From the sequence record NC_009760.1: a stretch of 64,000 nt of DNA; one strand, 5' to 3'. Shown piece by piece: positions 20,266 through 57,430 of the stretch. Positions within the stretch are counted from its first letter, which is position 1. Each line of letters starts with the position of its first letter. The translations under genes were made by a program, and so were the position numbers. The notes below the pieces were generated by a model. The model did not search any database, had not been told where the DNA came from, and was given only the letters and a program-made list of their open reading frames with translations.

Positions 20266-20283
20266 TGTGCGTGCGAACGCACA
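20266..20283. repeat. Conserved GCGA-loop hairpin, copy 1
   Basis: TGTGCGT-GCGA-ACGCACA upstream of the dnaG RBS. Confidence 0.75.
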
Positions 20284-20284
20284 T

Positions 20285-20316
20285 AAAAAAGACACCCTAC
20301 AATGAGAGTGTCTTTT
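20285..20316 (-). terminator. Intrinsic terminator after the lysin gene
   Basis: AAAAGACAC...GTGTCTTTTTT. Confidence 0.7.
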
Positions 20317-20320
20317 GCTT

Positions 20321-21427
20321 TTAGACGACCTTAACGAATTTCTCGCTTGCCGTGATATAGAATACAGCACCTTTTGAGTTCTGTACTTTATATTGCGGTG
20401 AGCCGTCTACATCTACTTGCCCGATGATTGTGAAGCCTTGACCTTTCAAGACAACACCGGACACTTTTGATTTGTCCCAAGTTGGTTGAGAGTAGAAGTT
20501 TAATTGGTCTACGATAGACTCAACACGCTTTCCTACATACCATGCTTGAGTTCCTACTACCTCAACGAACGTATCGCTCGCTGTGATGTAGAATGTTGCA
20601 CCTGCGGAGTTTTGTACCTTATACTGGAACGCATCTCCGACTTGCAGTTTCTCTACGATCTTAGGGAAGACTTGATCTTTTTCAATCGTACCCGCCACAT
20701 CTGCATCAGCCCAAGAAGGTCTGTTGTAGAATCGTAAAGAGTTTGCTTTACATTTCAATTGTTTCCCTGAGTAGTCGCCACCTAAAGAAGTAACATTGTC
20801 ATTATTGACAGGTGGAGGAGCGATTTGATTCGTTTTACCTCCGCTAATGTACCACTCTAAAGTTTTGTCACCCATTAATTTATTACGGTCAACTTTCCCT
20901 ACACCATTCATCCATCCGCCTGTTTCACCATCAGCATATTGCCAGATGTCACATTTGTACTTCGGTTCAGGGCCACCGTAACGTGGAATCCATAAGAAGT
21001 CAGCCTTCACTTTGTTTAATCCATACTTCTCATACATGTGATGAGATACGTAGAATCCAACCATCCAGCCTTTCGACTTACAGCGGTCAATGAATGCTTG
21101 AGATGCAGCAGCGATATTATCAGGGCCACATGATTTCAGCGTATCATCTTCCGTATCCAGTACAAGGAACTTTGCATTCGGGCTTACACGTTTCATGAAG
21201 TCGTCAGCCTCTACAATCGCATCTGCAACAGAGACAAAGCATCCGTAAGCATATGCGGCATGTGGTACGCCACGAGCTTCTAATTCACGTACAAAGCTAT
21301 CATACAAACGATCCTTTAAGTTAGAACCATATTGCACACGGCAAATTGCTAGTCCTAATTGTGGTGCTAGAACGTTCCAATTAATATTGTCGTTCCATTT
21401 CGAAATGTCGATTACTTCTCTACCCAT
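20321..21427 (-). CDS. GH25 muramidase (lysin) with two C-terminal SH3-like wall-binding repeats
   Basis: VIDISKWN, VLDTED, LWIPRYG, DIWQY, VDRN; repeats LRFYNRPSW..YKVQNSAG / LNFYSQPTW..YKVQNSKG. Confidence 0.88.
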   Translation of the reverse strand: MGREVIDISKWNDNINWNVLAPQLGLAICRVQYGSNLKDRLYDSFVRELEARGVPHAAYAYGCFVSVADAIVEADDFMKRVSPNAKFLVLDTEDDTLKSCGPDNIAAASQAFIDRCKSKGWMVGFYVSHHMYEKYGLNKVKADFLWIPRYGGPEPKYKCDIWQYADGETGGWMNGVGKVDRNKLMGDKTLEWYISGGKTNQIAPPPVNNDNVTSLGGDYSGKQLKCKANSLRFYNRPSWADADVAGTIEKDQVFPKIVEKLQVGDAFQYKVQNSAGATFYITASDTFVEVVGTQAWYVGKRVESIVDQLNFYSQPTWDKSKVSGVVLKGQGFTIIGQVDVDGSPQYKVQNSKGAVFYITASEKFVKVV

Positions 21428-21467
21428 ACTATCAGCTCCCTTGTGGGAGATAGAGGTTGGTTACCTC

Positions 21468-21803
21468 TTATAGTTCGTCAACTGACTTCAAGTCACCATA
21501 CGATAGAAATATGCGAAACTCAAATGATAGAGGCGCATAATCTTTTCCGACAACTCGTAAAACATAGTCAGTAACTTCATTATACATGTTCTCTTCGTGT
21601 CCTGCATTAATAAAGAATGTATTTGCTCCGCCACGCTGATGATTAACTCGAATCGCTTTATGTCCGAACTCACCCTCATACGCTTTGATTAACTTACGAT
21701 TGATTTCCTCTACTAACGCCTCTTTGTCGTATCCTGCGTGTACGACAATATTGAAAGCGCCGATTTGCACTTCATTTGCTCCTATCGGTTGTGGTTTTGC
21801 CAT
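21468..21803 (-). CDS. Hypothetical protein
   Basis: Start refined to MAKPQP. Confidence 0.5.
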   Translation of the reverse strand: MAKPQPIGANEVQIGAFNIVVHAGYDKEALVEEINRKLIKAYEGEFGHKAIRVNHQRGGANTFFINAGHEENMYNEVTDYVLRVVGKDYAPLSFEFRIFLSYGDLKSVDEL

Positions 21804-21972
21804 TGTGTTTGGCTCCCTTCTCTTTAATGTCTTTTTGTATTTCTGATACCAACACTGCACAATCATCACAATACCCTGTGTTGTGTAGAGACTCACTTGC
21901 TGGAATCTCCGTTTTACAACGTGTGCAATTTGTCACTACGTTTTCGAAATAACGTTTATCTCTTTTCATCAT
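21772..21972 (-). CDS. Small CxxC protein
   Basis: CTRC...CDDC. Confidence 0.5.
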   Translation of the reverse strand: MMKRDKRYFENVVTNCTRCKTEIPASESLHNTGYCDDCAVLVSEIQKDIKEKGAKHNGKTTTDRSK

Positions 21973-22382
21973 TATCCACCATTTACTACTTTCTTCGGTT
22001 TTACCCAGCTACACTTGTCACATACGAATCCATACTTTGGTGTTCCCGGAATACGATCCATCCAAAGTTCTCCTCCGCAATGACATAACTGGTCATCATT
22101 CATTTCATGGTACTTTAACGTATCGACCTTCGCTTCGATGTAGTTCGCTAAAGTATTTACTTCTTTACATTCCGGACATTCAATCAATTGCTCCATGTCC
22201 GTTTCTTCTTTAATACGTTTCTCTGTTGATTCATGTAATGCGTGGTCTTTATTAATTTCGATAATGCCGTTGTGGAAGATTACTTCCGTCATCTCTTTAT
22301 TTTGTCTGACTGCATACGGCTCACCGTTCTTTAATACAACATGCATCTCATGTGCTTGCGCACACGCTGGACATCTAAACAT
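21972..22382 (-). CDS. Multi-zinc-ribbon protein
   Basis: CPAC, CPEC, CHC, CDKC; GGAGG RBS. Confidence 0.6.
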   Translation of the reverse strand: MFRCPACAQAHEMHVVLKNGEPYAVRQNKEMTEVIFHNGIIEINKDHALHESTEKRIKEETDMEQLIECPECKEVNTLANYIEAKVDTLKYHEMNDDQLCHCGGELWMDRIPGTPKYGFVCDKCSWVKPKKVVNGG

Positions 22383-22393
22383 AATCTAACCTC

Positions 22394-22825
22394 CTAAATA
22401 TTTGAGTGCCACCCTAGTTTACCATCGACGATACCAAATATCTTTTCATGTGTATCTTCATACTGCTTTGAAAAGAACTGCGGGTGGGTTGGTATCTTCT
22501 CTCCCGGATGATTCGGGTCATCTTGCATTGAACCCTCTATGTACGGTACGGGTTTTAATTCTTTACTTGGCGGTTCGGATTCCTGCACTTCGTAACCCGG
22601 CCCATACCAATAGCGTAAGCAAAGCGGTGTACCATCTTGCGTTACATGTAAGTAATCACAAGGCATGTGGTGGGGATCAGGATGTTCGCATATTGCTGTC
22701 CTGTCATTTCTAGCTCCCCAACCTATGAAGCGTTCCTCAAAATGGTCACATTTGCTATCTGCTGGCGTAGGTGTTCGATACCCACGCTGTCGGTTTGTTG
22801 TGCGACCGATTTTAACTTTCGCCAT
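22394..22825 (-). CDS. Hypothetical protein
   Basis: Start refined to MAKVKIG after AAAGGAGAG. Confidence 0.5.
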   Translation of the reverse strand: MAKVKIGRTTNRQRGYRTPTPADSKCDHFEERFIGWGARNDRTAICEHPDPHHMPCDYLHVTQDGTPLCLRYWYGPGYEVQESEPPSKELKPVPYIEGSMQDDPNHPGEKIPTHPQFFSKQYEDTHEKIFGIVDGKLGWHSNI

Positions 22826-22904
22826 CGGAACTCTCCTTTCTTGATAAGACTCACATAGTAATCTTATCAAGAAAAGAAGCCGCCGACTAGGGCGACTGTC
22901 CTTT

Positions 22905-23615
22905 TTATACTGCTTCTTGTTCTTCCTCTTCTTCGTCCTCGTCCCAATCAAAGTCATCGTCGTCACCGACATGCTCTCTGATAACCGTTTTACCTGCAAC
23001 AATCTGACTGATTAATGTTTTGTCAGCCGTCATCGCTAGGTGCGGTTGGTGAGTAACCATGATAATCTGACGGTTAAATGTTTTCGAGATGAACGCTAAG
23101 AACTCACCTAGCTTCACCACATATTCTTCTGATACGTGTTTACCCGGTTCATCTAAGATGATAGGGCCTTGTATCTTCGGTTCGTTGTATACAACCATCA
23201 CCGCAACTTGCAATGCAATCGCTACGATGTCATTGATACCACCACCACGAGAATCTTGTGGTTCATTCTCAATCGGCTCACCATTTTCACCAACTGAACA
23301 TACGAGGAATCGTGCGGCAGGTTTCCCGCCTGATTCCGTCATCTCAATTTTGAATGTGAAATCATGACCGAATATATGTTGTAAGGCACGAGTAACAACC
23401 TTCTCCATACGCTTACGACCAGCTTCACGGGCTGAGTCTGCCGTCTTCACAAGTAGTGCAGAGATTTGTTCCAGCTTCATACGTTCCTGTACTACGCCTT
23501 CAATCTTTGCTTCTAGGTCTTTCTTTTGGTCAGCAAGGATATTGCGCTCTGCTACACGTTTGTTAAAGTCATCTTGCATTCCTACTACTTTATGTGTAAG
23601 TACGCTTAAACGCAT
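22905..23615 (-). CDS. SbcC/Rad50 C-terminal half (signature, Walker B, H-loop)
   Basis: Coiled coil followed by SRGGG, IILDEPGKHVS, IMVTHQ. Confidence 0.85.
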   Translation of the reverse strand: MRLSVLTHKVVGMQDDFNKRVAERNILADQKKDLEAKIEGVVQERMKLEQISALLVKTADSAREAGRKRMEKVVTRALQHIFGHDFTFKIEMTESGGKPAARFLVCSVGENGEPIENEPQDSRGGGINDIVAIALQVAVMVVYNEPKIQGPIILDEPGKHVSEEYVVKLGEFLAFISKTFNRQIIMVTHQPHLAMTADKTLISQIVAGKTVIREHVGDDDDFDWDEDEEEEEQEAV

Positions 23616-24331
23616 CAGTACACCTCCTTATTGTGATAAATCACTTCAAGTTCCTTTAATCCTTTTGGCTTGTATTCCTTAATAGTATCTTGAATACGAC
23701 TTGGTACAGATTCTAATTCATCATCCGTTAATGAGCGATGATCCACACGAACAATAATAGATGCTTCGTCCGGATAATACTCAAAGATAACCTGTACACT
23801 TACGCCCGGAATCTGTTTTAAATGATACTCAAGCATGGAGAGGTTATCATCACTTAACCCCTCCGGCTTTGTTTCTTTATAGTACGGCATACTTAGGCGA
23901 GACATATATTCAATCACACGTTTCGCATCTTTATCATAAGAGAATTGACGACCTAACTTATGTGCCAACATCTTAATGATGATTTGATTGTCCGTCTGAT
24001 TAATTAATCGTTTGAGTTCATCTACATTGTTCTTCTTTAGAAACTGTTCTGTATCTTGCCCGATTGCATTAGATAAGACACTGCCTTTACCCATCATTGT
24101 TCCCGGTACAATATAGTCCTGCGGGATACCCACATTAGCGTTTTTCATGAGCTGATTAACAGCATCCTCAAAATCAGTTTTGGTGTAAGATGCGGCCTCA
24201 GGAGAAGGTTTCTCAAACTGCTTGAATATTTCTGCCTCAAGAGCTTTCGCAGTATCACGACGAATTTGCTGATCTAACTCGGCTGATATATCTCTATATG
24301 GATTGGATGTAGATAATTCATTCTTGCCCAT
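23615..24331 (-). CDS. Hypothetical protein
   Basis: 238 aa between the sbcC halves. Confidence 0.55.
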   Translation of the reverse strand: MGKNELSTSNPYRDISAELDQQIRRDTAKALEAEIFKQFEKPSPEAASYTKTDFEDAVNQLMKNANVGIPQDYIVPGTMMGKGSVLSNAIGQDTEQFLKKNNVDELKRLINQTDNQIIIKMLAHKLGRQFSYDKDAKRVIEYMSRLSMPYYKETKPEGLSDDNLSMLEYHLKQIPGVSVQVIFEYYPDEASIIVRVDHRSLTDDELESVPSRIQDTIKEYKPKGLKELEVIYHNKEVY

Positions 24332-24339
24332 GATGACTC

Positions 24340-24639
24340 CTACTCTTCAAATTCCATATCGTCATCATCGTCTGCTACTTCTTCACCCGGTAAATATTGA
24401 CGAGCGTCTTCCATTACCTCTGTTAAGTTCTTTTCTTTTTCAGCGATAACAGTAGCTAAGTCCTTCGGATCGTAGCCCATGTCTTTAATTTTCTTGGCAG
24501 CTTCCTTACGACGTTTAGATGCTTCCTCTTTACGAGTTTCTAAGCGCACCTTATCACTCTTCGCTTGCTCAAATTCGTTCTTTAACATTTTTAATTGGCG
24601 GTCAAAGTTTGTAGTCATTTGTATTTCCTCCCTATGCAA
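24340..24639 (-). CDS. Small coiled-coil protein (possible missing SbcC coil segment)
   Basis: Heptad-rich; start overlaps the stop of the SbcD-SbcC(N) fusion. Confidence 0.55.
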   Translation of the reverse strand: MHREEIQMTTNFDRQLKMLKNEFEQAKSDKVRLETRKEEASKRRKEAAKKIKDMGYDPKDLATVIAEKEKNLTEVMEDARQYLPGEEVADDDDDMEFEE

Positions 24640-26941
24640 TATGTTCTAACATTTCATTTACTGCGTGTTCAGATACTTCTTGATTACATGTTGGACACTT
24701 GCTACCCATGTCTTTAAAGATGGATTGAATATCTTCTTCTAGCTTCGCAATATCTTGCGTTACAATTTCGATACTGCCATCAATCTCTTTACACACATAG
24801 TCTTCGCCTTCATATTCTTCTAGAAGTTTCTTGAGCGTTGCAATTTCCGCAACTTCTTTCTCGATTGCGTCGATGTCGATATTATCTAATGAAGCATACT
24901 CCGCTAAGTCCTCGGTATGCAGTTCTTCTTTCGCTTCTGATTTAATGTACTCTCTATTTAATTCCTTGAGTTCATTAACCTCTTTATAGATGTACTCGGC
25001 TGCACCTAATAAAGTAAGACCTTGCTCAAGCATTCCGTACTCTTTGTACTCCGAATTAACAGCAGATAAAGTACGTGCTGTTTTAGCGAAGTCATCTTGC
25101 AACTGTTCTAGCTCTGCAATTTCGCGAGCGATTTGCTCTGCTTCATTCACAAGTAACATACCACGTTCAACATAGGCATAATCATTTAACTCTGCATTGA
25201 TTTCCTTGATGGCACGAGACTTCTCTTTTAAGATACGTCTAAAGTCTTTCAAGTCTTCAATCTCATCGTCAAGGTTCTGCGCCGTCGTTAATAATCCTTT
25301 TAGGATATTTAAGCGCTTCTCAATTTCAGGAAGGTCATCATAATTCTTTAGCTTCTCATCCAGTTCTGCAATTTGCTTCTCACTTGCATTACTATCGACA
25401 GTAAGCTTTCGTATTTCCTTCCCCTTCTCTTTGATCGCAGCATCGACGATATGGACGCCCGTGAGTCTTCCGATTGTGTTAGCACGAACAGCAGGTGACT
25501 CTGAGAGTAAGAAGTGACTGTCAAGCTGATTGGAGAAGTTAATAGCTCGTTCAACACCTGTTGACAGTTCCACTTTAGGCATTTGATGAGTATTGGCGAT
25601 GTCGATAGGAATGTTATTCCCAAACCCCTTGAACTCAGTCTCCTTGCCGTTTGTATCACGTACGATGTACTCACCGGATGATGATTTAGTTCGTGAGCGA
25701 GTAATTGAAGACCCGTCTGTAAAACCGACTGTGACCGTAGTCCGACTAGCCCCGTGGCGAATAAAGTCGGCTCCTTTAGGCTCGTTATAGAATACCCATC
25801 GTAACGCACGTATGATGGCTGACTTCCCGGAGTCCGAAGCACCGGTGATTGCATTAAGTCCCTTGTCACTAAAATCAACCCTCGTCTTTTTATGTGATTG
25901 GAAGTTGGTTACCTCCACCCATGCGAGTCCAATTGCTTTCGCCTTCTCGATGTATCCATCTAGCTTACTATCTTGGAAGTTCTTCTCTTGATCTACGATA
26001 GCATCCAGTGCAGTTGATAATAATTTCTTCGAGATACCTTTTGTCTTCGCTAGTATTTCTTTCGGGTCAAACGATTCAAATGTTAAAGCATCCTCAATCG
26101 TTTGCTCGAATGCTGCTAAGTATTTCACCTGTTGTTTCTTCTGCACGATTTGTGTACGGTCAAATACGTCTACACCTTTTTGTGCAACTTGATATTCTAC
26201 ATACTCTACATCGAAGCCATTTGCGTCTACGTCAATCATGGCATACTGCGGAATACGCTTCATACTATCGGCACTTGCTTCATCACGACCAGTAGAACCC
26301 GGATTCGTAAATAGTGTACCGTTGATTTCATGCATATCATAACCCGGATGAAAATGACCATTAAAGACTGCATCAGCTTCCGTTACAACATGTTTTGTTA
26401 ATGTATGTTTTACGTCCGGATGGAACGGTTTTTCAAGTAACATACCGTGAGAGAATAGGAAGTCATAGTCACCTTTCTTCTTCACGTAGTAATCTAACAT
26501 TGGGTTATCATCAATCTCTGAATGATATTGTTTACCATGCAGGAATACGGTGAATGCACCCGTGTCAATCTTATGCGCACGCTTGTCTGTTAACAGCGTA
26601 ACAAGACCCGCATTCGCTAATGAACCGATTGCCGTTTGATTGATTGTATCCATTGAGTAACCATATAAATCATGATTACCGGGTACAAGATATACTCGAA
26701 TACCTTTCTTGCGAATACGTCGCAAGATGCGTTGATGCTCATTATATAATGAATAAGCGACACGAGGCGTATGGAACCAGTCTCCGCCATGAACGATGAA
26801 ATCTACATCATTTGCATACGCAACTTGTTCGATTTCAAGGAACTTATTCAAGATAGCATTGTGATAATCATCAATACGAGAGCCGGGATTACGACCCATG
26901 TCGTGACTATCTGTGAAATATATACCTTTCAAGAGCGTCAT
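24632..26941 (-). CDS. SbcD/Mre11 nuclease fused to the SbcC/Rad50 N-terminal half ending at the zinc hook
   Basis: TDSH, GGDWFH, PGNHD, FSHG, GHFH; then NFQSHK, Walker A GASDSGKS, Q-loop; coiled coil; terminal CPTC. Confidence 0.88.
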   Translation of the reverse strand: MTLLKGIYFTDSHDMGRNPGSRIDDYHNAILNKFLEIEQVAYANDVDFIVHGGDWFHTPRVAYSLYNEHQRILRRIRKKGIRVYLVPGNHDLYGYSMDTINQTAIGSLANAGLVTLLTDKRAHKIDTGAFTVFLHGKQYHSEIDDNPMLDYYVKKKGDYDFLFSHGMLLEKPFHPDVKHTLTKHVVTEADAVFNGHFHPGYDMHEINGTLFTNPGSTGRDEASADSMKRIPQYAMIDVDANGFDVEYVEYQVAQKGVDVFDRTQIVQKKQQVKYLAAFEQTIEDALTFESFDPKEILAKTKGISKKLLSTALDAIVDQEKNFQDSKLDGYIEKAKAIGLAWVEVTNFQSHKKTRVDFSDKGLNAITGASDSGKSAIIRALRWVFYNEPKGADFIRHGASRTTVTVGFTDGSSITRSRTKSSSGEYIVRDTNGKETEFKGFGNNIPIDIANTHQMPKVELSTGVERAINFSNQLDSHFLLSESPAVRANTIGRLTGVHIVDAAIKEKGKEIRKLTVDSNASEKQIAELDEKLKNYDDLPEIEKRLNILKGLLTTAQNLDDEIEDLKDFRRILKEKSRAIKEINAELNDYAYVERGMLLVNEAEQIAREIAELEQLQDDFAKTARTLSAVNSEYKEYGMLEQGLTLLGAAEYIYKEVNELKELNREYIKSEAKEELHTEDLAEYASLDNIDIDAIEKEVAEIATLKKLLEEYEGEDYVCKEIDGSIEIVTQDIAKLEEDIQSIFKDMGSKCPTCNQEVSEHAVNEMLEHIA

Positions 26942-27490
26942 CTATACTTCCCCCTTACCCTTCTTTTTGATATATTCAGCAATATCTTTTACCTTCGACT
27001 TCGCAAGTTGTCTTTTGAAATCTTGGTTATGATACTGACAGATACCATTTTCAACTTGATCTTGTTTGCATCGAGCTACGCCACATTCTCTTTCTTTAAG
27101 CTGAATGTATTGCTCCATGCTATCTATATTCCCTCTTGAGAAATGCAGATTAAAGTTCGCATAATGTTTCATGCACATTCCTTTTGCTTCTGCTCGTAAA
27201 CCGCAATGAGGGATAAAACATTGCACACCATGATAGGAAATGCGGTTTGTTTTACGTGGGTCACCTATTTTCAATCGTCTTTGATTATGCATTGCACATA
27301 TTCCTTTTGCATAAGCGGGACGCTCACAATCCTCAATACTACAGGTCTTGCCTTTGTTTATCAGAACAGGGTCATCAGTTGTACCCGTAAGTCTTAGTCT
27401 CTGATAATGTTTTGGACAATACCCTCTAGCGCCGGTGGCATCCTCTCCACAACCTTCCACTATACATATACGGGTAGCAACTGTACACAT
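26942..27490 (-). CDS. Protein of tandem Cx4C-x8-10-Cx2H zinc-finger repeats
   Basis: Four units, e.g. CIVEGCGEDATGARGYCPKHY, CSIEDCERPAYAKGICAMH. Confidence 0.7.
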   Translation of the reverse strand: MCTVATRICIVEGCGEDATGARGYCPKHYQRLRLTGTTDDPVLINKGKTCSIEDCERPAYAKGICAMHNQRRLKIGDPRKTNRISYHGVQCFIPHCGLRAEAKGMCMKHYANFNLHFSRGNIDSMEQYIQLKERECGVARCKQDQVENGICQYHNQDFKRQLAKSKVKDIAEYIKKKGKGEV

Positions 27491-28231
27491 TTAAATCTCT
27501 CCTCTGTTCTTCTTTTCTATATATTCGTTTGCATCTTTTGCATTGACACCTCTATGGTATCTAAAGTTTAGATGATGTTTATTACATAAGTGGTGTGCAA
27601 CAGTCTCTTCATTGCATCCATCAATTCTGCATATAGGATCCATTTGCCCTCTCAGATTTTCTACGTGATGGACGTCACCATATTTATTAAAACGTTGCAG
27701 ATGCACTTGGCACAAACGTTTACCGTGCGCTTCTTTTTCGCAACCTTCTACGCTACATATCTTACCCGAATTAACATAGTCAGGGTCGTCTGTATTTCCG
27801 TGACGTAACTCACGACGGTAATGTTTCCAACATAAACCCCTAGCCGCCTTCGCTTCATTTTCACACTCGTCTATTGTACAGGTGTTACCTTGCTTACTCA
27901 GGCGTGGACGCTTTCCCGCTTTTTCTTTCTTCCTCTCTTGTTCTGCTCTCCAAGCTGCTGCTTTCTCTCGGTCAGCTTTTAACTTTGCTTGCCATTGTTC
28001 AACTTCCGCTTGTCGAGTTGTTAAGATTGGTGCTAGGTTTACGCAAAAATCTAAATCAGTCTTTGCTTCCCATACACCATCTGTAAGAAGATTCCCGAAG
28101 CGGTCAATGTACCCCTTGCGTCCTTCATCAATCATCAGACCGACTTCCCAGTCACTATGCGATTCACGTTTCAACATACACATCATGAGAAGACCCATTA
28201 CCTTCTGTTCTTTCTTCTCACTCATCGTCAT
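27491..28231 (-). CDS. Protein with three C-terminal Cx4C..Cx2H zinc-finger repeats
   Basis: CTIDECENEAKAARGLCWKHY, CSVEGC..CQVH, CRIDGC..CNKH. Confidence 0.7.
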   Translation of the reverse strand: MTMSEKKEQKVMGLLMMCMLKRESHSDWEVGLMIDEGRKGYIDRFGNLLTDGVWEAKTDLDFCVNLAPILTTRQAEVEQWQAKLKADREKAAAWRAEQERKKEKAGKRPRLSKQGNTCTIDECENEAKAARGLCWKHYRRELRHGNTDDPDYVNSGKICSVEGCEKEAHGKRLCQVHLQRFNKYGDVHHVENLRGQMDPICRIDGCNEETVAHHLCNKHHLNFRYHRGVNAKDANEYIEKKNRGEI

Positions 28232-30383: not shown

Positions 30384-30385
30384 TA

Positions 30386-31425: not shown

Positions 31426-31740
31426 TTAGCCATTAATCCGTTTGTCATAGCAATAGCCACAAACATCTAATCCCGGATTCCTCGGCTCTGACTTACAATC
31501 AACACACTTCGGTTCTAGCTCTTTATAAATCGCTTCCTTGATCTCTCTCCATTCACCTAGTTGCTTCTGATGATTTGCAACTTCACGTTTGCGACCATCA
31601 ATTACAACTTGTGGTGTCCGCATACTTTCAGGAAGAGATTTAATATAAGCACTCGCTTGTTCACGACGAGTAATCTCCGTATTCACGAGCTTCCGAAGTT
31701 TCTTTAATTGTGCATTAGAAAACGGGCGACCGTTTACCAT
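31426..31740 (-). CDS. Hypothetical protein with C-terminal CxxC/CxxC
   Basis: CVDC...CGYC. Confidence 0.5.
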   Translation of the reverse strand: MVNGRPFSNAQLKKLRKLVNTEITRREQASAYIKSLPESMRTPQVVIDGRKREVANHQKQLGEWREIKEAIYKELEPKCVDCKSEPRNPGLDVCGYCYDKRING

Positions 31741-40675: not shown

Positions 40676-40696
40676 ATAACCTCCTTATACATAACA

Positions 40697-40712
40697 GGGC
40701 GTGCGAACGCCC
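40697..40712. repeat. Conserved GCGA-loop hairpin, copy 2
   Basis: GGGCGT-GCGA-ACGCCC. Confidence 0.75.
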
Positions 40713-40718
40713 CGTCAT

Positions 40719-48175: not shown

Positions 48176-48201
48176 CGTAAAACCTCCTTAAACATGCAAA
48201 A

Positions 48202-48221
48202 AAGCCCGTGCGAGCGGGCTT
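48202..48221. repeat. Conserved GCGA-loop hairpin, copy 3 (also a minus-strand terminator)
   Basis: AAGCCCGT-GCGA-GCGGGCTT; U tract on the minus strand. Confidence 0.7.
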
Positions 48222-48225
48222 CATC

Positions 48226-50105: not shown

Positions 50106-51163
50106 TACTTACCGAATAAAGTCTTTTTAATGTGAGCTTTTACTTCGACAACTTTAACTTTACCGTTTTTCGCTTTCGGTGGTTTGATACCGTGTTTCTT
50201 CATGATAGCTTGGATTTCCGCTTTTGTTTCAAGAGCGTCGATGTCCTCAGGAGTTAACTCATCTTCTTCGTCTTCCTCATCATCATCGTAGTCCTCTTCA
50301 TCATCTTCTTCTTCGTCATCCTCTTCCTCATCGTCAGACTCGTCTTCGTCCTCATCTTCTTCCTCTTCCTCGTCGTCCTCTTCTTCTTCATCGTCATCTT
50401 CTGCATCTTCTTCGTAGCCTTCTTCTTCATCCTCTACGTCTTCTACAGAATCGTTTTCGATTTCAGCATCGTCTTCTTCCTCTTCGTCGCCCGGTAATGC
50501 GAATCCAAGATATTCAGCTAATGCTTCTGCTAATTCATCCAGTTTAGAACGAGAGTTGATACCTTCAAGAGCTAGAGGTTTTGCGAATGCCCAAAGTTTC
50601 TTTGTACCTAATTTACGTAACTCTTCATAGTTTGTTACGCCTTCTGGTGCTTCCACTGTATCTTCCTCTTCTTCATCATCGTCGCCGTCTACATCTTCGA
50701 ACTCATCTTCGTCTTCCTCGTCCTCTTCAACTTCCTCGACAGGCTCTTGTTTTGCTTTCTTTTTCTTTTTAGCTGGCTTTTCTTCTACTTCTTCCTCGTC
50801 GTCATCAGCAGCTAAATCTTCGTTCTCTTCTGCTGGTGCTACTTTGCCTGCTGCAAGTTCTTGTAAGTAAGTTGTTAATGCCACTAATTCTTCTTGCGTT
50901 AATTTCGTTGGATCTTTACCTACTAATGCTTTCGCATCAATACCGCCTTGTAATGATTCTAACTTCACTGTTTTACCGGCACTTGCATGTTTAATTTTGC
51001 TTGATACTTTTACTGTTTCGCCAACGATTTCACCGATTTCTTCACCAGCTTTTGTTGTTGCGATGAACTTGTCACCCTTTTTAATAATATGGAATGCATC
51101 CTTTGCAATTGCTACGATACCTGCGAATACTGTTGCACCTGATTTACTTTTTAATTGAGTCAT
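50105..51163 (-). CDS. Extremely acidic protein with small helical (HeH/Rho-N-like) domains
   Basis: Long D/E runs flanking ELRKLGTKKLWAFAK..SKLDELAEAL and TKAEIQAIMKKHGI. Confidence 0.7.
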   Translation of the reverse strand: MTQLKSKSGATVFAGIVAIAKDAFHIIKKGDKFIATTKAGEEIGEIVGETVKVSSKIKHASAGKTVKLESLQGGIDAKALVGKDPTKLTQEELVALTTYLQELAAGKVAPAEENEDLAADDDEEEVEEKPAKKKKKAKQEPVEEVEEDEEDEDEFEDVDGDDDEEEEDTVEAPEGVTNYEELRKLGTKKLWAFAKPLALEGINSRSKLDELAEALAEYLGFALPGDEEEEDDAEIENDSVEDVEDEEEGYEEDAEDDDEEEEDDEEEEEDEDEDESDDEEEDDEEEDDEEDYDDDEEDEEDELTPEDIDALETKAEIQAIMKKHGIKPPKAKNGKVKVVEVKAHIKKTLFGK

Positions 51164-51389
51164 TTTGACTTCCTCCTCGATTTTGGTTTAATACTTTTTG
51201 ATATTCACTTGCCATCTCGTCACTGCCATAGAAAGGAGTTTGGCACTCCTCTCCCGTGACGACTTCCTCTTTACTGCCACGTATCAATCTTATTAAATCT
51301 TTTACTATGTCTATCGTCCACTCGAATACGAGTATCAAGACGACAGATAAGACGAACGCTACAATTATTGCAATCACGTCTGCTATCAA
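51144..51389 (-). CDS. Small membrane protein
   Basis: N-terminal TM helix. Confidence 0.5.
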   Translation of the reverse strand: MIADVIAIIVAFVLSVVLILVFEWTIDIVKDLIRLIRGSKEEVVTGEECQTPFYGSDEMASEYQKVLNQNRGGSQNDSIKK

Positions 51390-51401
51390 GAGGAAAACCT
51401 C

Positions 51402-52358
51402 CTATGATTCAAGCGACGACTCCGTGTTCTTCATTAACTTCATTGCATCAGCTAATTGATTCGATAGAACCACCAGCTTCTTATCAAGTATATCTTCATA
51501 CTCGGATGCTCTGTCTTGTAAATCCACCACACGTTTTGCATATCGCTGAACAGTTTTGACACTGGCTGTGCCTTTGCCAAGTAAGTCTGCAAAGTCGGCA
51601 AGCAATTGATTTGCTTCCTCTGACATTTGTGACTCAACCTGACGTTGTACCATATCACGTTGATCGCTCGTATCAATCATTGGAATAACTTCCATAATCG
51701 ACTTCGACGTTCCCGTATGGTAATCCTCTAAGTCATCAATCACGCCACGTAGGTTCTCTAACGTGTTACGTTGATTACGAGGAATGAATGTAGCCCTACC
51801 ATTCGGCATGATGCTTACATGGTTCATGTCATTTACGACACGACGTACAAGATTGTTTACAGTATCCTTAGTATGGAACTGCATCCATTCATTATACAAA
51901 GCTTGTGTATCAGACAGCAATACATCATACGGGTATTCTGTTAAGAAACTTGAATCCCAACTAATGTCCATTGTGCCTGTTTTCTTTTGAAGAATGAATT
52001 TCCCCACTGTAGCATAGCCCAGTTGCTCATTCTTCTTATCCACTAGCTCTCGTACCAAGTGACGAATCACCATATTGCCATCGGACTTCACTTCACGAAC
52101 CATCAGTCGTGCTTCGCTCGGTTTTCCTCCGAAGTCTATTGTCACCGTTGACGTTGCTTTTGCAGTCGCCCGGCGGTAAGCATCATGAGCCTTAATTTCC
52201 TGAGGCATGAACTTCGGGTCTAAGCTATTTCTAGCAAAGATTTGCCCTAAGTCATCCTTATGGATACGAAGGTCTGAAATGGTATGGAACTCTAAGAACC
52301 CTAATAATTCGGAAGTTTGCAAGTCTGCATTACTTCTTACTGCTGCTACGTTTGCCAT
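51402..52358 (-). CDS. DUF6744-like protein
   Basis: LLGFLEFHTI, DAYRRAT and C-terminal coiled coil; family call from memory. Confidence 0.45.
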   Translation of the reverse strand: MANVAAVRSNADLQTSELLGFLEFHTISDLRIHKDDLGQIFARNSLDPKFMPQEIKAHDAYRRATAKATSTVTIDFGGKPSEARLMVREVKSDGNMVIRHLVRELVDKKNEQLGYATVGKFILQKKTGTMDISWDSSFLTEYPYDVLLSDTQALYNEWMQFHTKDTVNNLVRRVVNDMNHVSIMPNGRATFIPRNQRNTLENLRGVIDDLEDYHTGTSKSIMEVIPMIDTSDQRDMVQRQVESQMSEEANQLLADFADLLGKGTASVKTVQRYAKRVVDLQDRASEYEDILDKKLVVLSNQLADAMKLMKNTESSLES

Positions 52359-52381
52359 AACTGTTTCCCCTCTCCTAGTAG

Positions 52382-52759
52382 TTACTTAATTTCAAGAGAC
52401 AACTTCATGTAGGTATCAAAGCCCATCTCGATGTCAAAGAATGCACCGTATTCAGTTGTCGTGTAGCTAACCGTTTCTGTATTGAATAGCAACGGTAATA
52501 CATGGTTTAAGTTTGTAGATGGGTCTGTATCTAACCCTTCACGCTTCATAATCTCTTCTGCCTTTGGCGTTACATATCCATAATGTAATTCCACATTATC
52601 TACTTCAGCAGAATAGACCAAATCCACTTTTACAATACCTTTCGTGCGAACGAAAGTAGAAGCTAGAGCTTCAATCATCCCTTGTAAATCATTATGTGTT
52701 AAGCTGATTTGTACCTTGTCAGCTTTAATCAGAGTGCCAAGTCTGTTTGTATATGCCAT
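52382..52759 (-). CDS. Hypothetical protein
   Basis: Start refined to MAYTNR after GGAGG. Confidence 0.5.
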   Translation of the reverse strand: MAYTNRLGTLIKADKVQISLTHNDLQGMIEALASTFVRTKGIVKVDLVYSAEVDNVELHYGYVTPKAEEIMKREGLDTDPSTNLNHVLPLLFNTETVSYTTTEYGAFFDIEMGFDTYMKLSLEIK

Positions 52760-52770
52760 GCTATAACCTC

Positions 52771-53307
52771 CTACCATAGTACGTAATCGTCTTTTAAATG
52801 AACGAGTTTCTTCGATAATAAATGACCGATTACATTTGTTCCGCCTACAAAGAATCTCACTACTTTCCATTCATCATTCTCAACAACAATGGAGTAGATA
52901 TAAGCGTCTTGTCTATCCAAGATATAATTTGTTTCATCTCTTGTTAAGATGTAATTGTTACTATTTAATCCCTTGAATGCTTTTCTCGGAATTAAATCTG
53001 CTTCGTGCATAAAGTCCTGTATATTATCCACTGTCGGTGCAGATGATTTCACCGGTGGTTCAGGCTTCTTGTATTCAATTATTTCCGGTACAACTTCGTA
53101 CGCTTTTAAATATGATATTGGAAGGTTCTCACTATGTGCGACAGACTTCATGGCTTCATGTACTGACCTCGCCTGTATCTTCTTTAGCAAGATTTCCGTA
53201 TCAAACGGTTCATTTGCTTCTGTTGTATTACCTTTGTCATCGACATCGTAAATACGAGCGTCTGCATACTTTTCATCCACCATGACTAGATATGTCTTCA
53301 CAATCAT
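52771..53307 (-). CDS. Hypothetical protein
   Basis: AAGGAGG RBS; directly downstream of promoter copy d. Confidence 0.55.
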   Translation of the reverse strand: MIVKTYLVMVDEKYADARIYDVDDKGNTTEANEPFDTEILLKKIQARSVHEAMKSVAHSENLPISYLKAYEVVPEIIEYKKPEPPVKSSAPTVDNIQDFMHEADLIPRKAFKGLNSNNYILTRDETNYILDRQDAYIYSIVVENDEWKVVRFFVGGTNVIGHLLSKKLVHLKDDYVLW

Positions 53308-53323
53308 CCCTCCTTGTTACTTA

Positions 53324-53353
53324 TAGTGTTACCAAATGTAATGCTAATTATGC
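53324..53353 (-). promoter_or_regulatory. SigmaF/G-type promoter, copy d
   Basis: GCATA-N15-GGTAACACTA containing AGCATTAC-ATTTG-GTAACA. Confidence 0.65.
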
Positions 53354-53788
53354 AGCAAACTCTACATAAAATTCATTCATGTCTACCTTCGCTGCACCTA
53401 CAAGATACCCAATCACACCATTCGTATTAATCGTGTCATCAGATACAATCCAGTGACCGTGTATATTTTCTTTCACGGCATAGAATCTCAATGTACGACC
53501 TGCTTCTACAGATAACACCTGTACATGGTCGAGTGTGTGAAGATACTGTGCATTACCAGGAACACGGTCAGTCTTACGAAGAAGATTCGCGGCTATAATG
53601 AAATCTTCAAATGACATGTCGGTACGATCATCGTTACCCTCTTCCATCATTGCGTTGATAGTGTTTAACATCCTATCTTTGACAGCATCATCTATACCCA
53701 TTTCACCATCGAAATACTCGTCCTCATAATCAAAATCCATATCCTCATTAACTTGCGGATTCATCTTCATCACCTTCATCGTCTCCAC
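53348..53788 (-). CDS. Acidic hypothetical protein
   Basis: Operon context. Confidence 0.5.
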   Translation of the reverse strand: METMKVMKMNPQVNEDMDFDYEDEYFDGEMGIDDAVKDRMLNTINAMMEEGNDDRTDMSFEDFIIAANLLRKTDRVPGNAQYLHTLDHVQVLSVEAGRTLRFYAVKENIHGHWIVSDDTINTNGVIGYLVGAAKVDMNEFYVEFAA

Positions 53789-53996
53789 AAATTACTAAAT
53801 GGAAGTATTCTTCTGTAACCAGTTTATCCATTGTTGTTTCATGCGTACATGTGTAACATTCAACGTCTGTCGGTTGTAGTTCTTCTGTTGGGCTGACATT
53901 AATTGTCTTACCGCTTCCATCACATACAACAACGGCTGTCATATTTTTGTGGTACTTAAATATTCCACCGCCACATTCCGGGCATACTTTTGTCAT
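53748..53996 (-). CDS. Small zinc-ribbon protein
   Basis: CPECG...CYTC; GAGGAGG RBS. Confidence 0.55.
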   Translation of the reverse strand: MTKVCPECGGGIFKYHKNMTAVVVCDGSGKTINVSPTEELQPTDVECYTCTHETTMDKLVTEEYFHLVICGDDEGDEDESAS

Positions 53997-54074
53997 ACAA
54001 ATCTAACCTCCTCTGGTTCTTACCACTGGTTATCTATATGAACTAGGGCATTACCCTAGAGAATCTACGTAATA

Positions 54075-54090
54075 GTGCGTGCGAACGCAC
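54075..54090. repeat. Conserved GCGA-loop hairpin, copy 4
   Basis: GTGCGT-GCGA-ACGCAC. Confidence 0.75.
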
Positions 54091-54099
54091 AAAAGATGT

Positions 54100-54507
54100 T
54101 TAAAACATGTGTCTTCCTTTACGTTTTGCTTCCTTCATCGCCTTACGTCGTGCTTCACGATTTTGATATAGTTCAACCGGGTACTTCATTGATTCGTTTA
54201 TCTTTTCTATAAACTGTTCATCTAAACTTTGTGCAACTCTTGGAGCAGCGATAATTTCAATTTGCTCCTGTATATCCTGCAATACGATATGGTTACTTAT
54301 CTTCGCTAATTCCGCCATTGCCTCAGGACTTAATTTACCACTTTGAGAACCAACAACGATGTATTTCTTTTCTTTTTCATTTATTTCTGATATTCCTTCA
54401 TAAAACGCCTCTAATGCATCAGGATCCATTCGGCCACTCGCATCATCAACGATGATTAATTGCTCTCTTTCCACGGTTCTCCCTCGCTTCTTTACGGCGT
54501 TGCGCAC
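54100..54507 (-). CDS. Hypothetical protein
   Basis: Probable GTG start near 54474. Confidence 0.5.
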   Translation of the reverse strand: MRNAVKKRGRTVEREQLIIVDDASGRMDPDALEAFYEGISEINEKEKKYIVVGSQSGKLSPEAMAELAKISNHIVLQDIQEQIEIIAAPRVAQSLDEQFIEKINESMKYPVELYQNREARRKAMKEAKRKGRHMF

Positions 54508-54736
54508 GGTTCTTAAAATTCATCGCATCAATTTGACGTTGCTCTGCTAAGACCATCGCTTCTTGCCATCCATGTAAATGTACATCACTCGGATCAACCG
54601 CAAGCATTTTGCCTCGTCCTCCTGTTGCACCAAACATTTCAACAACAACACCTTTTGGTATGTTTAGATAAGAATAGGCAGCGGAGTGTGCCGGATTAAA
54701 CCCGACAACACCCGTGCCTATAGAACGCCTCATCAC
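54446..54736 (-). CDS. Hypothetical protein
   Basis: Shares an NR..RRK basic ending with its downstream neighbour. Confidence 0.45.
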   Translation of the reverse strand: MMRRSIGTGVVGFNPAHSAAYSYLNIPKGVVVEMFGATGGRGKMLAVDPSDVHLHGWQEAMVLAEQRQIDAMNFKNRAQRRKEARENRGKRAINHR

Positions 54737-55236
54737 TTCGCCACCAGATGCGCCATATCTTTTGCATCTGTCGCTTTGATTTCGATTTCTTCTGTGCGGT
54801 CAAACTCTTCATCCGTTAATGCCATGAACTGAATCATAGCAGGTTTGAATTGTCGCCACGCACCACGTTCATGACACCATGCGACAACTTGACCATTCTT
54901 CCAATTGTGAGGTTCAATTAAACGTTTTGATATACCGCCTTTTGCATCTTTGTATTCAATCGCTAACTTCTTACGTTGCGTTGCACTCATTACAATATAA
55001 GCGATAAACATCGACGGGTCATCTGTTTGTAGGTCGGAAGTATTTGCCACTTTTGTAGACTCTCCCGGCTTCTCGTATGACTTCTCGATGTTGGTGTTGA
55101 TGAACGCTTTATACATGTTCGCCATCACACCGTCTGGATCGTTTTCCTTTTCTACTTTGTATGCTTCCACCATAAGTTTCTGAATACGACTAAGCTGTCT
55201 ATATTCAACTCCGTTATCTGCCACTAATCTCATCAA
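54733..55236 (-). CDS. WYL-domain protein
   Basis: LAIEYKDAKGGISKRLIEPH, VVAWCHERGAWRQFK. Confidence 0.75.
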   Translation of the reverse strand: MMRLVADNGVEYRQLSRIQKLMVEAYKVEKENDPDGVMANMYKAFINTNIEKSYEKPGESTKVANTSDLQTDDPSMFIAYIVMSATQRKKLAIEYKDAKGGISKRLIEPHNWKNGQVVAWCHERGAWRQFKPAMIQFMALTDEEFDRTEEIEIKATDAKDMAHLVAK

Positions 55237-55684
55237 ACTTCGCCTCCTGTAATGTATCTTGGAACTCCATTAAATAATACGATGCAATTTGTGCTGGCAA
55301 GAAGCCCTCGTCCGGGCGTTCTGTCACATACTTGCTATATGATTTTAGTAAGAAACGTAACTGCATTTCATTACAGTCCTTCCAATTTCTCGGCCAGTTT
55401 TGTTTTGGATGAACATTCATATCCATTAGGTACTCATCTAGGTAACCATGACTTAATGCTTCTTTAATTACATCTTCATGATATGCTAGTGTATCTTTAC
55501 CCGGCTTCTTGCCGTAGTTTGGTAAATCACGCACATCGAATGTCTCCATTTCAGGCTCATCTACAACCTGATAGTTGTATTTCATCTTCTCTTCTAATTC
55601 ATCATGCATATAAGAATGAAAGATGGTAATGCCTCCATAGACGGTTAACACTTCTGCTGGTACACGTTTAGATATATACGGCAT
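55214..55684 (-). CDS. Hypothetical protein
   Basis: Coupled ORF. Confidence 0.5.
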   Translation of the reverse strand: MPYISKRVPAEVLTVYGGITIFHSYMHDELEEKMKYNYQVVDEPEMETFDVRDLPNYGKKPGKDTLAYHEDVIKEALSHGYLDEYLMDMNVHPKQNWPRNWKDCNEMQLRFLLKSYSKYVTERPDEGFLPAQIASYYLMEFQDTLQEAKFDEISGR

Positions 55685-56031
55685 TATTCAACACTCATTT
55701 CCGGATATAGTTTCGTTGCTGACTCAAAGATGGCATTATTACGTGGATCAGAATCATTCATGAGTTTATCAGCAGCATGTTTCGCAATCGCAACCATCTG
55801 CTCTTTTGTATACTCACCGTTTTGGAATACGTTCTCTACTTCCGATAAAATGTCCATGTAGTCATAACGTACATGTCCATCGAACGGGAAAACTTCTACA
55901 CTTTGCACTTCTGCATTAGGCCCCCATGCACCTTCGATACCTGCTTGCACGCCTTTACAAAGACTAGAATCCGAAATCATATCTACTTTATCTAATGTCA
56001 TTGCCACAAGAAATGTCTTCTTCATTACCAC
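55684..56031 (-). CDS. Hypothetical protein
   Basis: Coupled ORF. Confidence 0.5.
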   Translation of the reverse strand: MVMKKTFLVAMTLDKVDMISDSSLCKGVQAGIEGAWGPNAEVQSVEVFPFDGHVRYDYMDILSEVENVFQNGEYTKEQMVAIAKHAADKLMNDSDPRNNAIFESATKLYPEMSVE

Positions 56032-56492
56032 TTCATCCCCTCTTTTGGCGTATATTCTTTTATATTATGCATCGCCGTTTTTGCCTTCTCCATCCCTCCG
56101 CTTACACGTTCATGAAGATATTCATTATGTTGATTATTGATATGACTTGTAATGGTTGCTATATTTTCGTTCGCCATACTCACGGCATCAATCAATCCAT
56201 TAATCGCTCGCTCCATATGCGCAAGTGACATACGAGTATTCCGTACTCGTTCAACTTCTATTTCATCATTGAGTGCAACATTCGCTTCACGAGCTAGTTG
56301 CGAAAGTTCCCACTCACCCATTGCTTGAATGACTTTATTGGATACGATAGGTCGATAGTTCTTTTGTATATCTGTATTTTGAAAGGCTTTCTGCAACTGA
56401 TACAATTCTTCTTCTGTTGCATTTAGCATCGTAATAAATAACGTAGGTCTGTCCGATAAACTTACAGGACTTGTTTGATTAATTTCTTCCAC
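56025..56492 (-). CDS. Hypothetical coiled-coil protein
   Basis: Coupled ORF. Confidence 0.5.
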   Translation of the reverse strand: MEEINQTSPVSLSDRPTLFITMLNATEEELYQLQKAFQNTDIQKNYRPIVSNKVIQAMGEWELSQLAREANVALNDEIEVERVRNTRMSLAHMERAINGLIDAVSMANENIATITSHINNQHNEYLHERVSGGMEKAKTAMHNIKEYTPKEGMKW

Positions 56493-57226
56493 TCTTCGTC
56501 ATCCTCCAATACCTTGACTACTTCAAAGTTCGTTGCTTCCATGCGTGCCTTCATCCAGTTTAATGTTAAGATGATATTCTTCATTGCATCTTCTAAGGAT
56601 TGCACTTGGTTATCTACAGCTTCGATACCTACCCTATCATTACCACGAACTGCTTCATTACGAAGATTTGTTAACCTATCGAAATGACGTTGAAACTGGT
56701 CAGATGAACTCATCTCTAGATTTACATCCACATACATATGGTCGGGTTTATACACATCCCAACGTATTCCTGTTACCCACGGTATCATTGTTCTAATACT
56801 ATGCGGGTTGCCATACCCGTTTAGTGTATACCCATAAGTCACTTGTGTGAGTTCATCAAATATCTTCCACTGCGTTGACTCATCCAGTGCCAATGCAGAT
56901 GGTGGTAATGCAAGGTCATCCTTGATTGTTAACTCTAAATCAACACAATACGTTTCACTCTTACTAGGGTCGATTTCGAAGTTATAAAAGCAATGCATAA
57001 GGTCTTCCTCTTCGAATAGACTGCCCGAACCTGCATCTACCTGTAATGGTCGTACATACTGCATATCTGTAAAGTTTACAATTGCTTCGGGGAATGCAAT
57101 GAGTAATGCGCCATTTTGATTATTCTCATAAATGAATCCCCTTGATCCACACTCGACACCAATATTGTTTTCACCATTGGGCCAAAAGTCCTGACTTGCT
57201 TCTACCCAGTTCTTTAAGTGAATCAT
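56462..57226 (-). CDS. Hypothetical protein
   Basis: 254 aa, operon context. Confidence 0.55.
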   Translation of the reverse strand: MIHLKNWVEASQDFWPNGENNIGVECGSRGFIYENNQNGALLIAFPEAIVNFTDMQYVRPLQVDAGSGSLFEEEDLMHCFYNFEIDPSKSETYCVDLELTIKDDLALPPSALALDESTQWKIFDELTQVTYGYTLNGYGNPHSIRTMIPWVTGIRWDVYKPDHMYVDVNLEMSSSDQFQRHFDRLTNLRNEAVRGNDRVGIEAVDNQVQSLEDAMKNIILTLNWMKARMEATNFEVVKVLEDDEEWKKLIKQVL

Positions 57227-57409
57227 TTAGCACGCCACCCTTCCTCGCTGTGCTGTACTGCTGATAATTGCAGTTGGTTCCTTCGCTAACAACTTTTGGT
57301 CTGCCTCACCTGTTGTTTTAGCGTATATAAAATCTGAATGTGGATAACCATCCACGTAATACTTAATGTAATACTCAAACATGACTACTAACCTCCTTTT
57401 GTCGTACAA
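57227..57409 (-). CDS. Small hypothetical protein (true start likely MFEYY)
   Basis: AAAGGAGG RBS precedes the internal Met. Confidence 0.45.
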   Translation of the reverse strand: MYDKRRLVVMFEYYIKYYVDGYPHSDFIYAKTTGEADQKLLAKEPTAIISSTAQRGRVAC

Positions 57410-57412
57410 AAA

Positions 57413-57430
57413 GAGCCGTGCGAACGGCTC
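57413..57430. repeat. Conserved GCGA-loop hairpin, copy 5 (also a minus-strand terminator)
   Basis: GAGCCGT-GCGA-ACGGCTC; U tract on the minus strand. Confidence 0.75.

Follow-up and report, generated by a model that had tools for sequence, protein, structure and literature searches.

The DNA analysed here (the window, 64,000 nucleotides) belongs to the Bacillus thuringiensis jumbo phage 0305phi8-36 (NC_009760/EF583821), with whose + strand it is 100% identical at genome positions 124001-188000; the genome measures 218,948 bp and has terminal repeats of 6,479 bp. Nearly all right-arm genes lie on the - strand, as is evident from GC and AT skew, the list of open reading frames (ORFs) and the deposited annotation. 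In the window they include genes for an endolysin, a DNA primase, a DNA polymerase and a processivity factor, and a small hairpin with a near-invariant core recurs among the early and replication genes. Together with a conserved tail the hairpin forms an element of roughly 30 bp, whose conserved span is about 22 nucleotides (nt). We propose, in a judgement that is evenly balanced between belief and doubt, that the hairpins are the upstream half of a promoter of about 30 bp used by the phage's own polymerase, gp99, with RNA starting at a conserved G.

The polymerase gene itself (ORF099, genome 208026-211682) lies 20 kb beyond the window. Its product matches the Pfam family RdRP (PF05183) at residues 46-733, is by its sequence a YonO-like (YonO/QDE-1-like) two-barrel single-subunit RNA polymerase, and is the sole RNA polymerase encoded by 0305phi8-36.

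The hairpin element

Read in the sense of the genes, the element consists of 3-6 variable paired nt, the sequence CGT-TCGC-ACG, the complementary arm, a mostly T-rich spacer and the tetranucleotide TGTA. The spacer completes the 8 nt that lie between the end of the core and TGTA, whose G is present in all 19 distinct copies of the genome, while the other three bases are each found in 17 of them. An original prediction made on this window had described a family of five covarying hairpins around a 10-nt core. Their coordinates and sequences were all correct, but the family is larger, since a sixth copy (core at 52643-52652) had been missed and a weak seventh candidate lies at 31709-31740 (-); likewise, the 10-nt core stands, but the conserved unit runs on downstream through the 8 nt and TGTA. 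Because the right-arm genes are on the - strand, the hairpins as first written, on the + strand, represent the template strand.

The covarying, still-paired outer stems proposed at the time are borne out when 67 distinct copies, taken from eight genomes, are aligned without gaps. Paired cells amount to 92.8%; shuffling lowers this figure to 65.4%, and sliding the partners lowers it to 49% or less. The covariation score is 0.712, which none of 500 shuffles reached, against 0.174. Six positions (C9, G10, T12, C15, C17 and G18) are invariant throughout the alignment, and G28 is conserved in at least 90% of the copies. The pairs adjoining the core (7-20 and 8-19) are Watson-Crick in every copy, each of the two occurring in four types. 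The innermost variable pair is T-A in 50 copies, C-G in 12, G-C in 3 and C.A in 2, and the three innermost variable pairs do not contain a single G.U in 201 cells, the two C.A cells being G.T on the template strand. For the variant at 48207 the original prediction was right as well: the + strand can pair T.G there, but in gene sense the two bases are a C.A mismatch. Loops take the forms TAGC, TCGC, TGTC, TGAC, TGGC, TTAC and TATC, so that in every one of the 67 copies (the CG..CG class) a gene-sense T-N-N-C corresponds to 5'-G-N-N-A-3' on the template strand.

In the window the sequence CGTGCGARCG occurs six times, always on the + strand, against an expectation of 0.13, and six occurrences were reached in none of 100 shuffles. 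The genome-wide count suggested alongside the original prediction gives 20 copies, namely 19 distinct ones plus the duplicate in the terminal repeat (position 71); every copy is on the + strand, and the opposite strand contains no occurrence. The duplicate aside, they are confined to the arm at 144-213 kb and oriented as the genes are, and the left arm has none. In addition, no 10-mer of the genome is as over-represented as CGTTCGCACG (18 copies, 0.2 expected), and the same over-representation analysis found no second repeated motif of comparable copy number anywhere in the genome. A position-weight scan returns 18 strong copies of 23.6-33.3 bits, clear of background and all on the - strand of the right arm, with 15.6 bits for the terminal-repeat copy, and a covariance model places the six window copies at 26-35 bits and adds one weak extra candidate. 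The candidate at 31709-31740 scores 15.1 bits in the position-weight scan and 17.3 bits (E 0.005) in the covariance model, which leaves its membership uncertain. At the gathering threshold of Rfam 15 no family matches the hairpin elements, the only hits in the window being two tRNA-like ones.

The position of the element relative to genes is equally regular (Table 1). From the conserved G to the next start codon there are 14-99 nt, with one case of 179 nt; at 7 of the 17 intergenic copies (the terminal-repeat copy is left out of this count) the distance is 14-34 nt, which is too little room for another promoter. Four of the five copies first noticed are, as claimed, close to a ribosome-binding site (RBS), and copies 1 and 2 do share GTTATGTAwAAGGAGG. 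Copy 1 lies 4 nt before the primase RBS and begins 3 nt after the end of the endolysin gene's terminator, and it is the sole conserved element ahead of that RBS. Clean T runs had been assigned to just two of the five, which is correct: they are found only at 48207 and 57417 (T6 and T5, copies 3 and 6), and copies 1, 2 and 5 have no U tracts.

Table 1. Coordinates of the hairpin elements and associated features (window positions unless stated otherwise; sequences in gene sense except where a + strand hairpin is written)
Feature	Position	Strand	Core	Conserved tetranucleotide	Candidate start G	Score (bits)	Surroundings and remarks
Copy 1	20256..20287	-	20270-20279	TGTA 20258-20261	20260	32.9	Hairpin 20266-20283; between endolysin ORF237 and DNA primase ORF236; G to ATG 17 nt
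Canonical intrinsic terminator of endolysin ORF237	20287..20316	-					12-bp hairpin and U6; RNA fold -26.4 kcal/mol, z -4.4
Weak candidate copy	31709..31740	-		TGCA			AAACGG-TCGC-CCGTTT, then 8 nt; overlaps start of ORF019
Copy 2	40686..40717	-	40700-40709	TGTA 40688-40691	40690	35	9 nt past stop of DNA polymerase ORF240, 14 nt ahead of ORF034 start
Copy 3	48193..48224	-	48207-48216 (A/G variant)	TGCA 48195-48198	48197	26	T6 tail; between ORF040 and processivity factor ORF039
Copy 4	52629..52660	-	52643-52652	TGTA 52631-52634	52633	32.6	CTTTCGT-GCGA-ACGAAAG; inside annotated ORF047
Copy 5	54064..54095	-	54078-54087	CGTA 54066-54069	54068	27.1	Between ORF051 and ORF050
Copy 6	57403..57434	-	57417-57426	TGTA 57405-57408	57407	29.5	T5 tail; between ORF059 and ORF058
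Gene-free regions	L117:6832-7332, 9576-10653; L118:15940-16430, 18647-19690; genome about 202.3-203.4 kb						

Relatives and polymerase lineages

A protein search yielded 25 homologues of gp99 with 98-33% identity, many of them on metagenomic contigs of about 210 kb and one on a 206-kb Paenibacillus 'plasmid'. All relatives came from this search; a related-locus search with gp99 among viral contigs gave no matches, and the exact pattern of core, N8 and TGTA produced 106 single matches across viral contigs, which is the level of chance (two jumbo contigs were checked and held one copy each). We examined nine polymerase loci with 10-kb flanks, in which gp99 identity falls from 85% to 33% (Table 2).

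All nine loci carry hairpin elements of the same kind on the gene strand, weakly so in L123. Counted as gene strand/opposite strand, the copies number 10/0, 10/0, 10/0, 9/0, 4/0, 5/0, 7/0, 7/1 and 3-4/0. At every locus the copies begin about 0.1-1.5 kb ahead of the polymerase gene, with another just past it, and there are none among the genes of the same strand that lie still further upstream. The architecture of the element and its rules of strand and position are found, at corresponding sites, in every polymerase-bearing genome examined, each time in a lineage-specific version: the core changes with the polymerase lineage, appearing as TCGC, TAGC, CGC-TGTC-GCG, TGAC/TGTC or CGAC-AKA-GTCG. 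Even the nine copies of L127 follow a like design, with an invariant stem of 4 bp and a loop of 3 nt. The conservation of the loop among relatives, which the original prediction had made a test of its idea, holds for the T-N-N-C form in the eight aligned genomes, but L127 and L123 have loops of another type. In L117 and L118 a TAG stop codon falls within the hairpin loop, and several upstream ORFs end inside the hairpin.

Table 2. Versions of the element at nine polymerase loci (last column: sequence that follows the 8-nt spacer)
Locus	gp99 identity	Core (gene sense)	Downstream
L116	85%	CGTTCGCACG, at the same sites as in 0305phi8-36	TGTA
L117-L119	61-54%	CGT-TAGC-ACG; variants CGG-TAGC-CCG, CGC-TGGC-GCG, CGT-TATC-ACG	TGTA
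L126	46%	TGAC and TGTC loops	TGTT
L123	46%	CGG-TAAAR-CCG (weak)	Varies
L124	44%	CGC-TGTC-GCG	TGA
L125	41%	TAGC and TGGC loops	YGAT
L127	33%	CGAC-A(T/G)A-GTCG	TGA or TGT

Some features of the related loci deserve mention in their own right. Gene-free regions of 0.5 and 1.1 kb, kept between relatives, each open at a hairpin element (Table 1); these may be candidate non-coding RNAs, and the tiny ORF243 and ORF244 in one such region may be spurious. In L127 (17042-17170) three tandem elements of the L127 type, with a period of 43 nt, stand at the start of a gene-free region of about 960 nt. Finally, L126 (CP186007, a 206.5-kb 'plasmid' of Paenibacillus sp. EC2-1) carries a gp99-type polymerase of 46% identity, hairpin elements and a ParA-like gene, and looks like a 0305phi8-36-like phage kept as a plasmid.

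Transcript depth around the elements

Transcript depth was taken from contigs of food-fermentation metatranscriptomes (runs X3, X4 and X6) over window positions 52000-58000, where transcription runs leftward. Around copy 5 (core at 54078) the contig word depth is 131-295 upstream and 1126-2047 downstream, a 5- to 8-fold rise which argues against termination at this site, and across copy 4 (52643) it rises 1.45-fold in two of the three runs; the DNA run is flat at 13.9. The rise lends weak support to promoter activity or differential stability.

Several close strains of the phage are present at very high depth in these RNA libraries, and the hairpin elements fall at breakpoints where conserved sequence gives way to sequence that varies among the strains (e.g., 57428-57451). 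A box of about 20 nt, ATTACATTTGGTRAYACTA, is common to window 53302-53347 and genome 189470-189505, in both cases directly 5' of an RBS (ORF048 and ORF068), and contig depth goes up about 2.8-fold across the window copy.

Other signals in the early region

Between the boundary of the terminal repeat and ORF100/gp99, a second repeated motif, GTATCRCRYACGTTATGTC in gene sense, has six copies (L122:3805-4273, genome about 211.79-212.26 kb). Four of them are in tandem with a spacing of 23-25 nt, and the last one adjoins the hairpin element upstream of gp99; the motif is also conserved in L116-L118, and it has GTTATGT in common with the hairpin element's tail. It could represent a further class of promoter, iterons or an array of operators. 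A near-consensus sigma-70-type promoter, TTGACA-17-TATACT, is found at L009:33872-33900 (genome about 203.87-203.90 kb) in a gap that has no hairpin element, and is kept in relatives (L118:18095-18220; L119:18181-18302); the early region thus alternates between gaps of the host type and gaps of the element type. At genome positions 71-110 and 212540-212579 a pair of degenerate cores stands in tandem (CATTCGCACG and CGTTCGCACG, separated by 30 nt and lacking TGTA), 70-100 bp inside the terminal-repeat boundary, a position kept in L116, L117 and L118. They may mark the end of an immediate-early unit or play a role in the formation of the repeat.

Two further promoter readings of the elements were considered and set aside. 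Under a sigma-70 -35/-10 reading the start would land inside the Shine-Dalgarno sequence, and scans found no such sites at the elements. The -35 box of SPO1 late promoters is CGTTAGA, which CGTTAGC resembles, but the spacing to a GATAAT-like box is just 12-13 nt. A HIRAN-like C-terminal domain of gp99 was likewise dropped, as it was an atlas lead (0.80) only, with no Pfam match in the 25 homologues and no PDB sequence match. Lastly, the - strand of the window has two tRNA-like genes, at 58565-58668 (30.5 bits) and 59122-59193 (36 bits), whose scores attain the threshold of the Rfam tRNA family; the deposited record labels them merely tRNA-like elements.

Discussion

Our preferred reading, that of promoters for gp99, can be laid out as a series of steps. 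Host RNA polymerase would transcribe the terminal-repeat genes and the gp99 gene first. gp99 would next recognise the element, probably in the form of a hairpin that is either extruded when the DNA is supercoiled or exposed on the template (+) strand. It would read the invariant C-G and G-C pairs beneath the loop and begin the transcript at the conserved G, which lies 9 nt beyond the core (8 nt, T, G). Such promoters would serve the right arm's early, middle and replication genes, and the T-rich copies may additionally stop host-polymerase transcripts that come from upstream. We infer all three of the binding protein, the start site and DNA rather than RNA as the recognised form, the last being hinted at by the absence of G.U from the innermost variable pairs together with the G-N-N-A loop of the template strand. 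Among the four functions that the original prediction had listed, the template-strand DNA hairpin in the manner of phage N4 fits the element best, while a processing site or stabiliser keeps a share of the probability; its broader claim, of a specifically recognised element rather than an ordinary terminator, is supported by the six invariant positions, the covarying stem, the fixed TG and the lack of T-tails in two lineages. We would go one step further only tentatively, and with slightly less conviction than we have in gp99 as the user of the element: these might be the first definable promoters of YonO/QDE-1-like polymerases, made of template-strand hairpins with a G-N-N-A loop and a start 9 nt past the core, convergent with N4, with each lineage having its own co-evolved hairpin code.

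Several observations weigh against promoters for gp99. The G-N-N-A rule fails in L127, whose sense-strand loop is A-K-A, and in L123 (TAAAR). The outer stem contains six internal gene-sense G.T wobbles but not one A.C. Although the T-rich tail biases this count, the pattern as such favours folding of RNA or of the non-template strand; gene-sense wobble is restricted to the outermost, T-tail-biased positions, and the strand asymmetry of wobble pairs is mixed (two C.A and no G.T in the core, six G.T and no A.C in the outer stem). By nearest-neighbour energies the template-strand DNA hairpin is on average just 0.25 kcal/mol more stable. The placement of the core, a median of about 9 nt after the upstream stop codon, is terminator-like; 12 of the 19 copies in 0305phi8-36 have a tail in which T fills 5 or more of the 8 nt behind a 6-bp stem; L124 and L127 each have one copy with a canonical terminator directly after it; and the copy after orf81 was called a terminator by Hardies et al. 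(PMC2147016). The divergence of the core in step with the polymerase would suit any other lineage-specific phage protein equally. As for the polymerase, the literature gives orfs 205, 209 and 81 as the only right-arm virion genes and does not report gp99 as a virion protein, and we found no sigma-70-like promoter in the 1 kb upstream of its gene. Finally, contig depth does not change across copy 6 (57417), and it is a coarse measure without read ends, taken from samples of mixed strains.

The alternative that we take most seriously, while still regarding it as improbable, is a signal for RNA processing or stability, in which a hairpin in polycistronic mRNA has its loop and closing pairs read by a phage or host endoribonuclease that cuts at the fixed UG/UA. 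The upstream mRNA would keep a protective 3' hairpin and the downstream cistron would be freed, as in Cas6/Csy4-type cleavage or the 3' processing of histone stem-loops. Conservation of the loop, the closing pairs and a dinucleotide at fixed distance fits such a protein-guided cut, the hairpin does lie within upstream transcripts, with several upstream ORFs ending in it, the outer-stem wobbles (six against none) point the same way, and the unequal depth on either side of the 54078 copy could reflect differential stability. Yet the three innermost variable pairs lack G.U in all 67 copies, we know of no stable or recognised class of RNA loop with the form U-N-N-C, and no candidate nuclease was identified. 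Copy 1, moreover, directly follows a strong terminator, and therefore little upstream RNA would reach it, and the promoters of the phage-encoded polymerase would stay unexplained. Somewhat lower still we rank a polymerase-specific terminator or attenuator, whose hairpin and conserved tail would stop or pause gp99, or host polymerase aided by a phage factor, and so insulate or grade expression along the arm. There is a precedent in the two-barrel virion RNA polymerase of P23-45, with a conserved 26-nt terminator motif, and the elements do stand directly after stop codons, often with T-rich tails; a simple terminator scan flags seven gene-strand copies in the 199-213 kb stretch scanned and, on the opposite (+) strand, the hairpins of window copies 3 and 5, the copy past the polymerase gene has a stem of 15-17 bp, and the orf81 copy was, as mentioned, taken for a terminator by Hardies et al. 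This explanation would, however, leave seven downstream genes with 34 nt or less and no promoter, there being no second repeated motif to serve as a promoter set; it sits badly with the copy inside ORF047, with a depth that climbs rather than falls downstream of 54078, and with L124 and L125, where by the above tail criterion none of 5 and none of 4 copies are T-rich (4-5 of 9-10 are in L117-L119).

Ordinary Rho-independent terminators that resemble each other through spread by duplication seem to us very improbable. While the copies at 48207, 57417 and 189535 have the look of textbook terminators, core and loop are invariant at matching sites of phages whose polymerases are just 41-61% identical, where the outer stems compensate, and a TG at fixed distance is no terminator feature. 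Window copies 1, 2 and 5 lack U tracts and the L124 and L125 copies lack T-rich tails, and no sigma-70-like sites were found at the seven intergenic copies that leave 14-34 nt to the next start codon. We give just as slim a chance to a DNA-level signal apart from transcription, such as a hairpin for primase and replication priming, or a recombination or packaging site. The strictly Watson-Crick inner stem, the two degenerate tandem cores 70-100 bp inside the terminal-repeat boundary and the two primases that the phage encodes would suit it, but the strict placement from stop codon to RBS, the orientation matched to the genes, the short spacing to the RBS and the absence of copies from the left arm would not. 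Antitermination of the lambda nut/boxB type, another of the functions originally suggested, we also consider unlikely: no boxA-like companion was noticed beside the 19 copies, although no search was aimed at it.

For the promoters of YonO-like and crAss-like two-barrel polymerases the element offers a well-defined candidate of about 30 bp and about 19 copies, with natural specificity variants in at least six polymerase lineages. If hairpin recognition is true, it would constitute a second, independent origin of DNA-hairpin promoters, and the preference of the QDE-1 family for single-stranded DNA would gain a link to a physiological mechanism of initiation. Should the element instead be a processing or termination signal, it would still represent a conserved, lineage-specific regulatory code of a poorly known group of jumbo phages.

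Comparison with known systems

With intrinsic terminators the element shares a GC-rich hairpin directly after a stop codon and, in some copies, a T run; it differs from them in its invariant loop and closing pairs, its TG at fixed distance, the many tails that are not T-rich and the copy within an ORF.

In the same phage and the same right arm, Hardies et al. 2007 (Virol J 4:97, PMC2147016) described a 21-bp candidate for a phage-specific promoter in 14 copies, in non-coding segments just big enough for a promoter, and proposed it, without experiment, as the target of orf99. This motif is very probably our hairpin element, because no other motif in the genome reaches that copy number (14 there, 18-19 here), although the published logo (Fig. 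6) could not be read. The text of that paper does not mention a hairpin, covariation or relatives. To this the present analysis adds the covariation of the hairpin, the TG at its constant distance, the template loop of the form G-N-N-A, versions particular to each lineage across ten genomes, and the case against terminators.

Among two-barrel polymerases, QDE-1 and gp66 of crAss phi14:2 prefer single-stranded DNA templates in vitro (bioRxiv 10.1101/2020.03.07.982082). gp96/gp64 of P23-45, which like gp66 and YonO come from the same broad superfamily, also use phage-specific conserved motifs, but these are described as AT-rich or GC-rich boxes and not as hairpins, and no common motif was found for the early transcripts of crAss gp66. 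The YonO promoter is undefined (PMC5467207). The start site determined by experiment for YonO lies at position 2225998 of B. subtilis 168; on SPbeta it can be located no more finely than L121:4600-4793, the span bracketed by the published primers. Within or just 5' of this bracket lies CCCTTCTTTTCTGTATC with the hairpin TGGAGA-TTCC-TCTCCA (L121:4585-4600), and after the HU gene of BUCT082 lies GAGGGAT-TAGC-ATCCCTC (L120:7255-7272), which has a T-N-N-C loop like the SPbeta hairpin.

The most instructive comparison is with the promoters of the N4 virion RNA polymerase, which have a conserved GC-rich core and flanking variable inverted repeats that must pair, a template loop that requires a 5' G and a 3' A (a sheared pair), a template A-run as spacer and a template C at +1 (PMC4496689). 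Our element likewise has a GC-rich core at a small loop, variable yet paired flanks, a template loop of the form G...A and a T-rich non-template spacer followed by a conserved base that would be G in RNA, and it belongs to the early part of a genome with a non-sigma phage polymerase. It departs from N4 in a loop of 4 nt rather than 3, a closing pair that is mostly T-A where N4 requires C-G, a distance of about 14.5 nt rather than 11 from the loop centre to the conserved G, and about 19 copies rather than 3; furthermore, gp99 is a YonO/QDE-1-like two-barrel enzyme unrelated to the T7-like N4 polymerase, which is packaged in the virion and needs supercoiling and SSB to recognise its promoters. 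Because loop size, closing pair and polymerase family differ, and packaging of gp99 in the virion is unreported, the element is not a member of the N4 promoter family. Nevertheless, given the G-N-N-A template loop in every aligned copy, the innermost pairs free of G.U and the shared layout, an N4-like promoter is its closest parallel.

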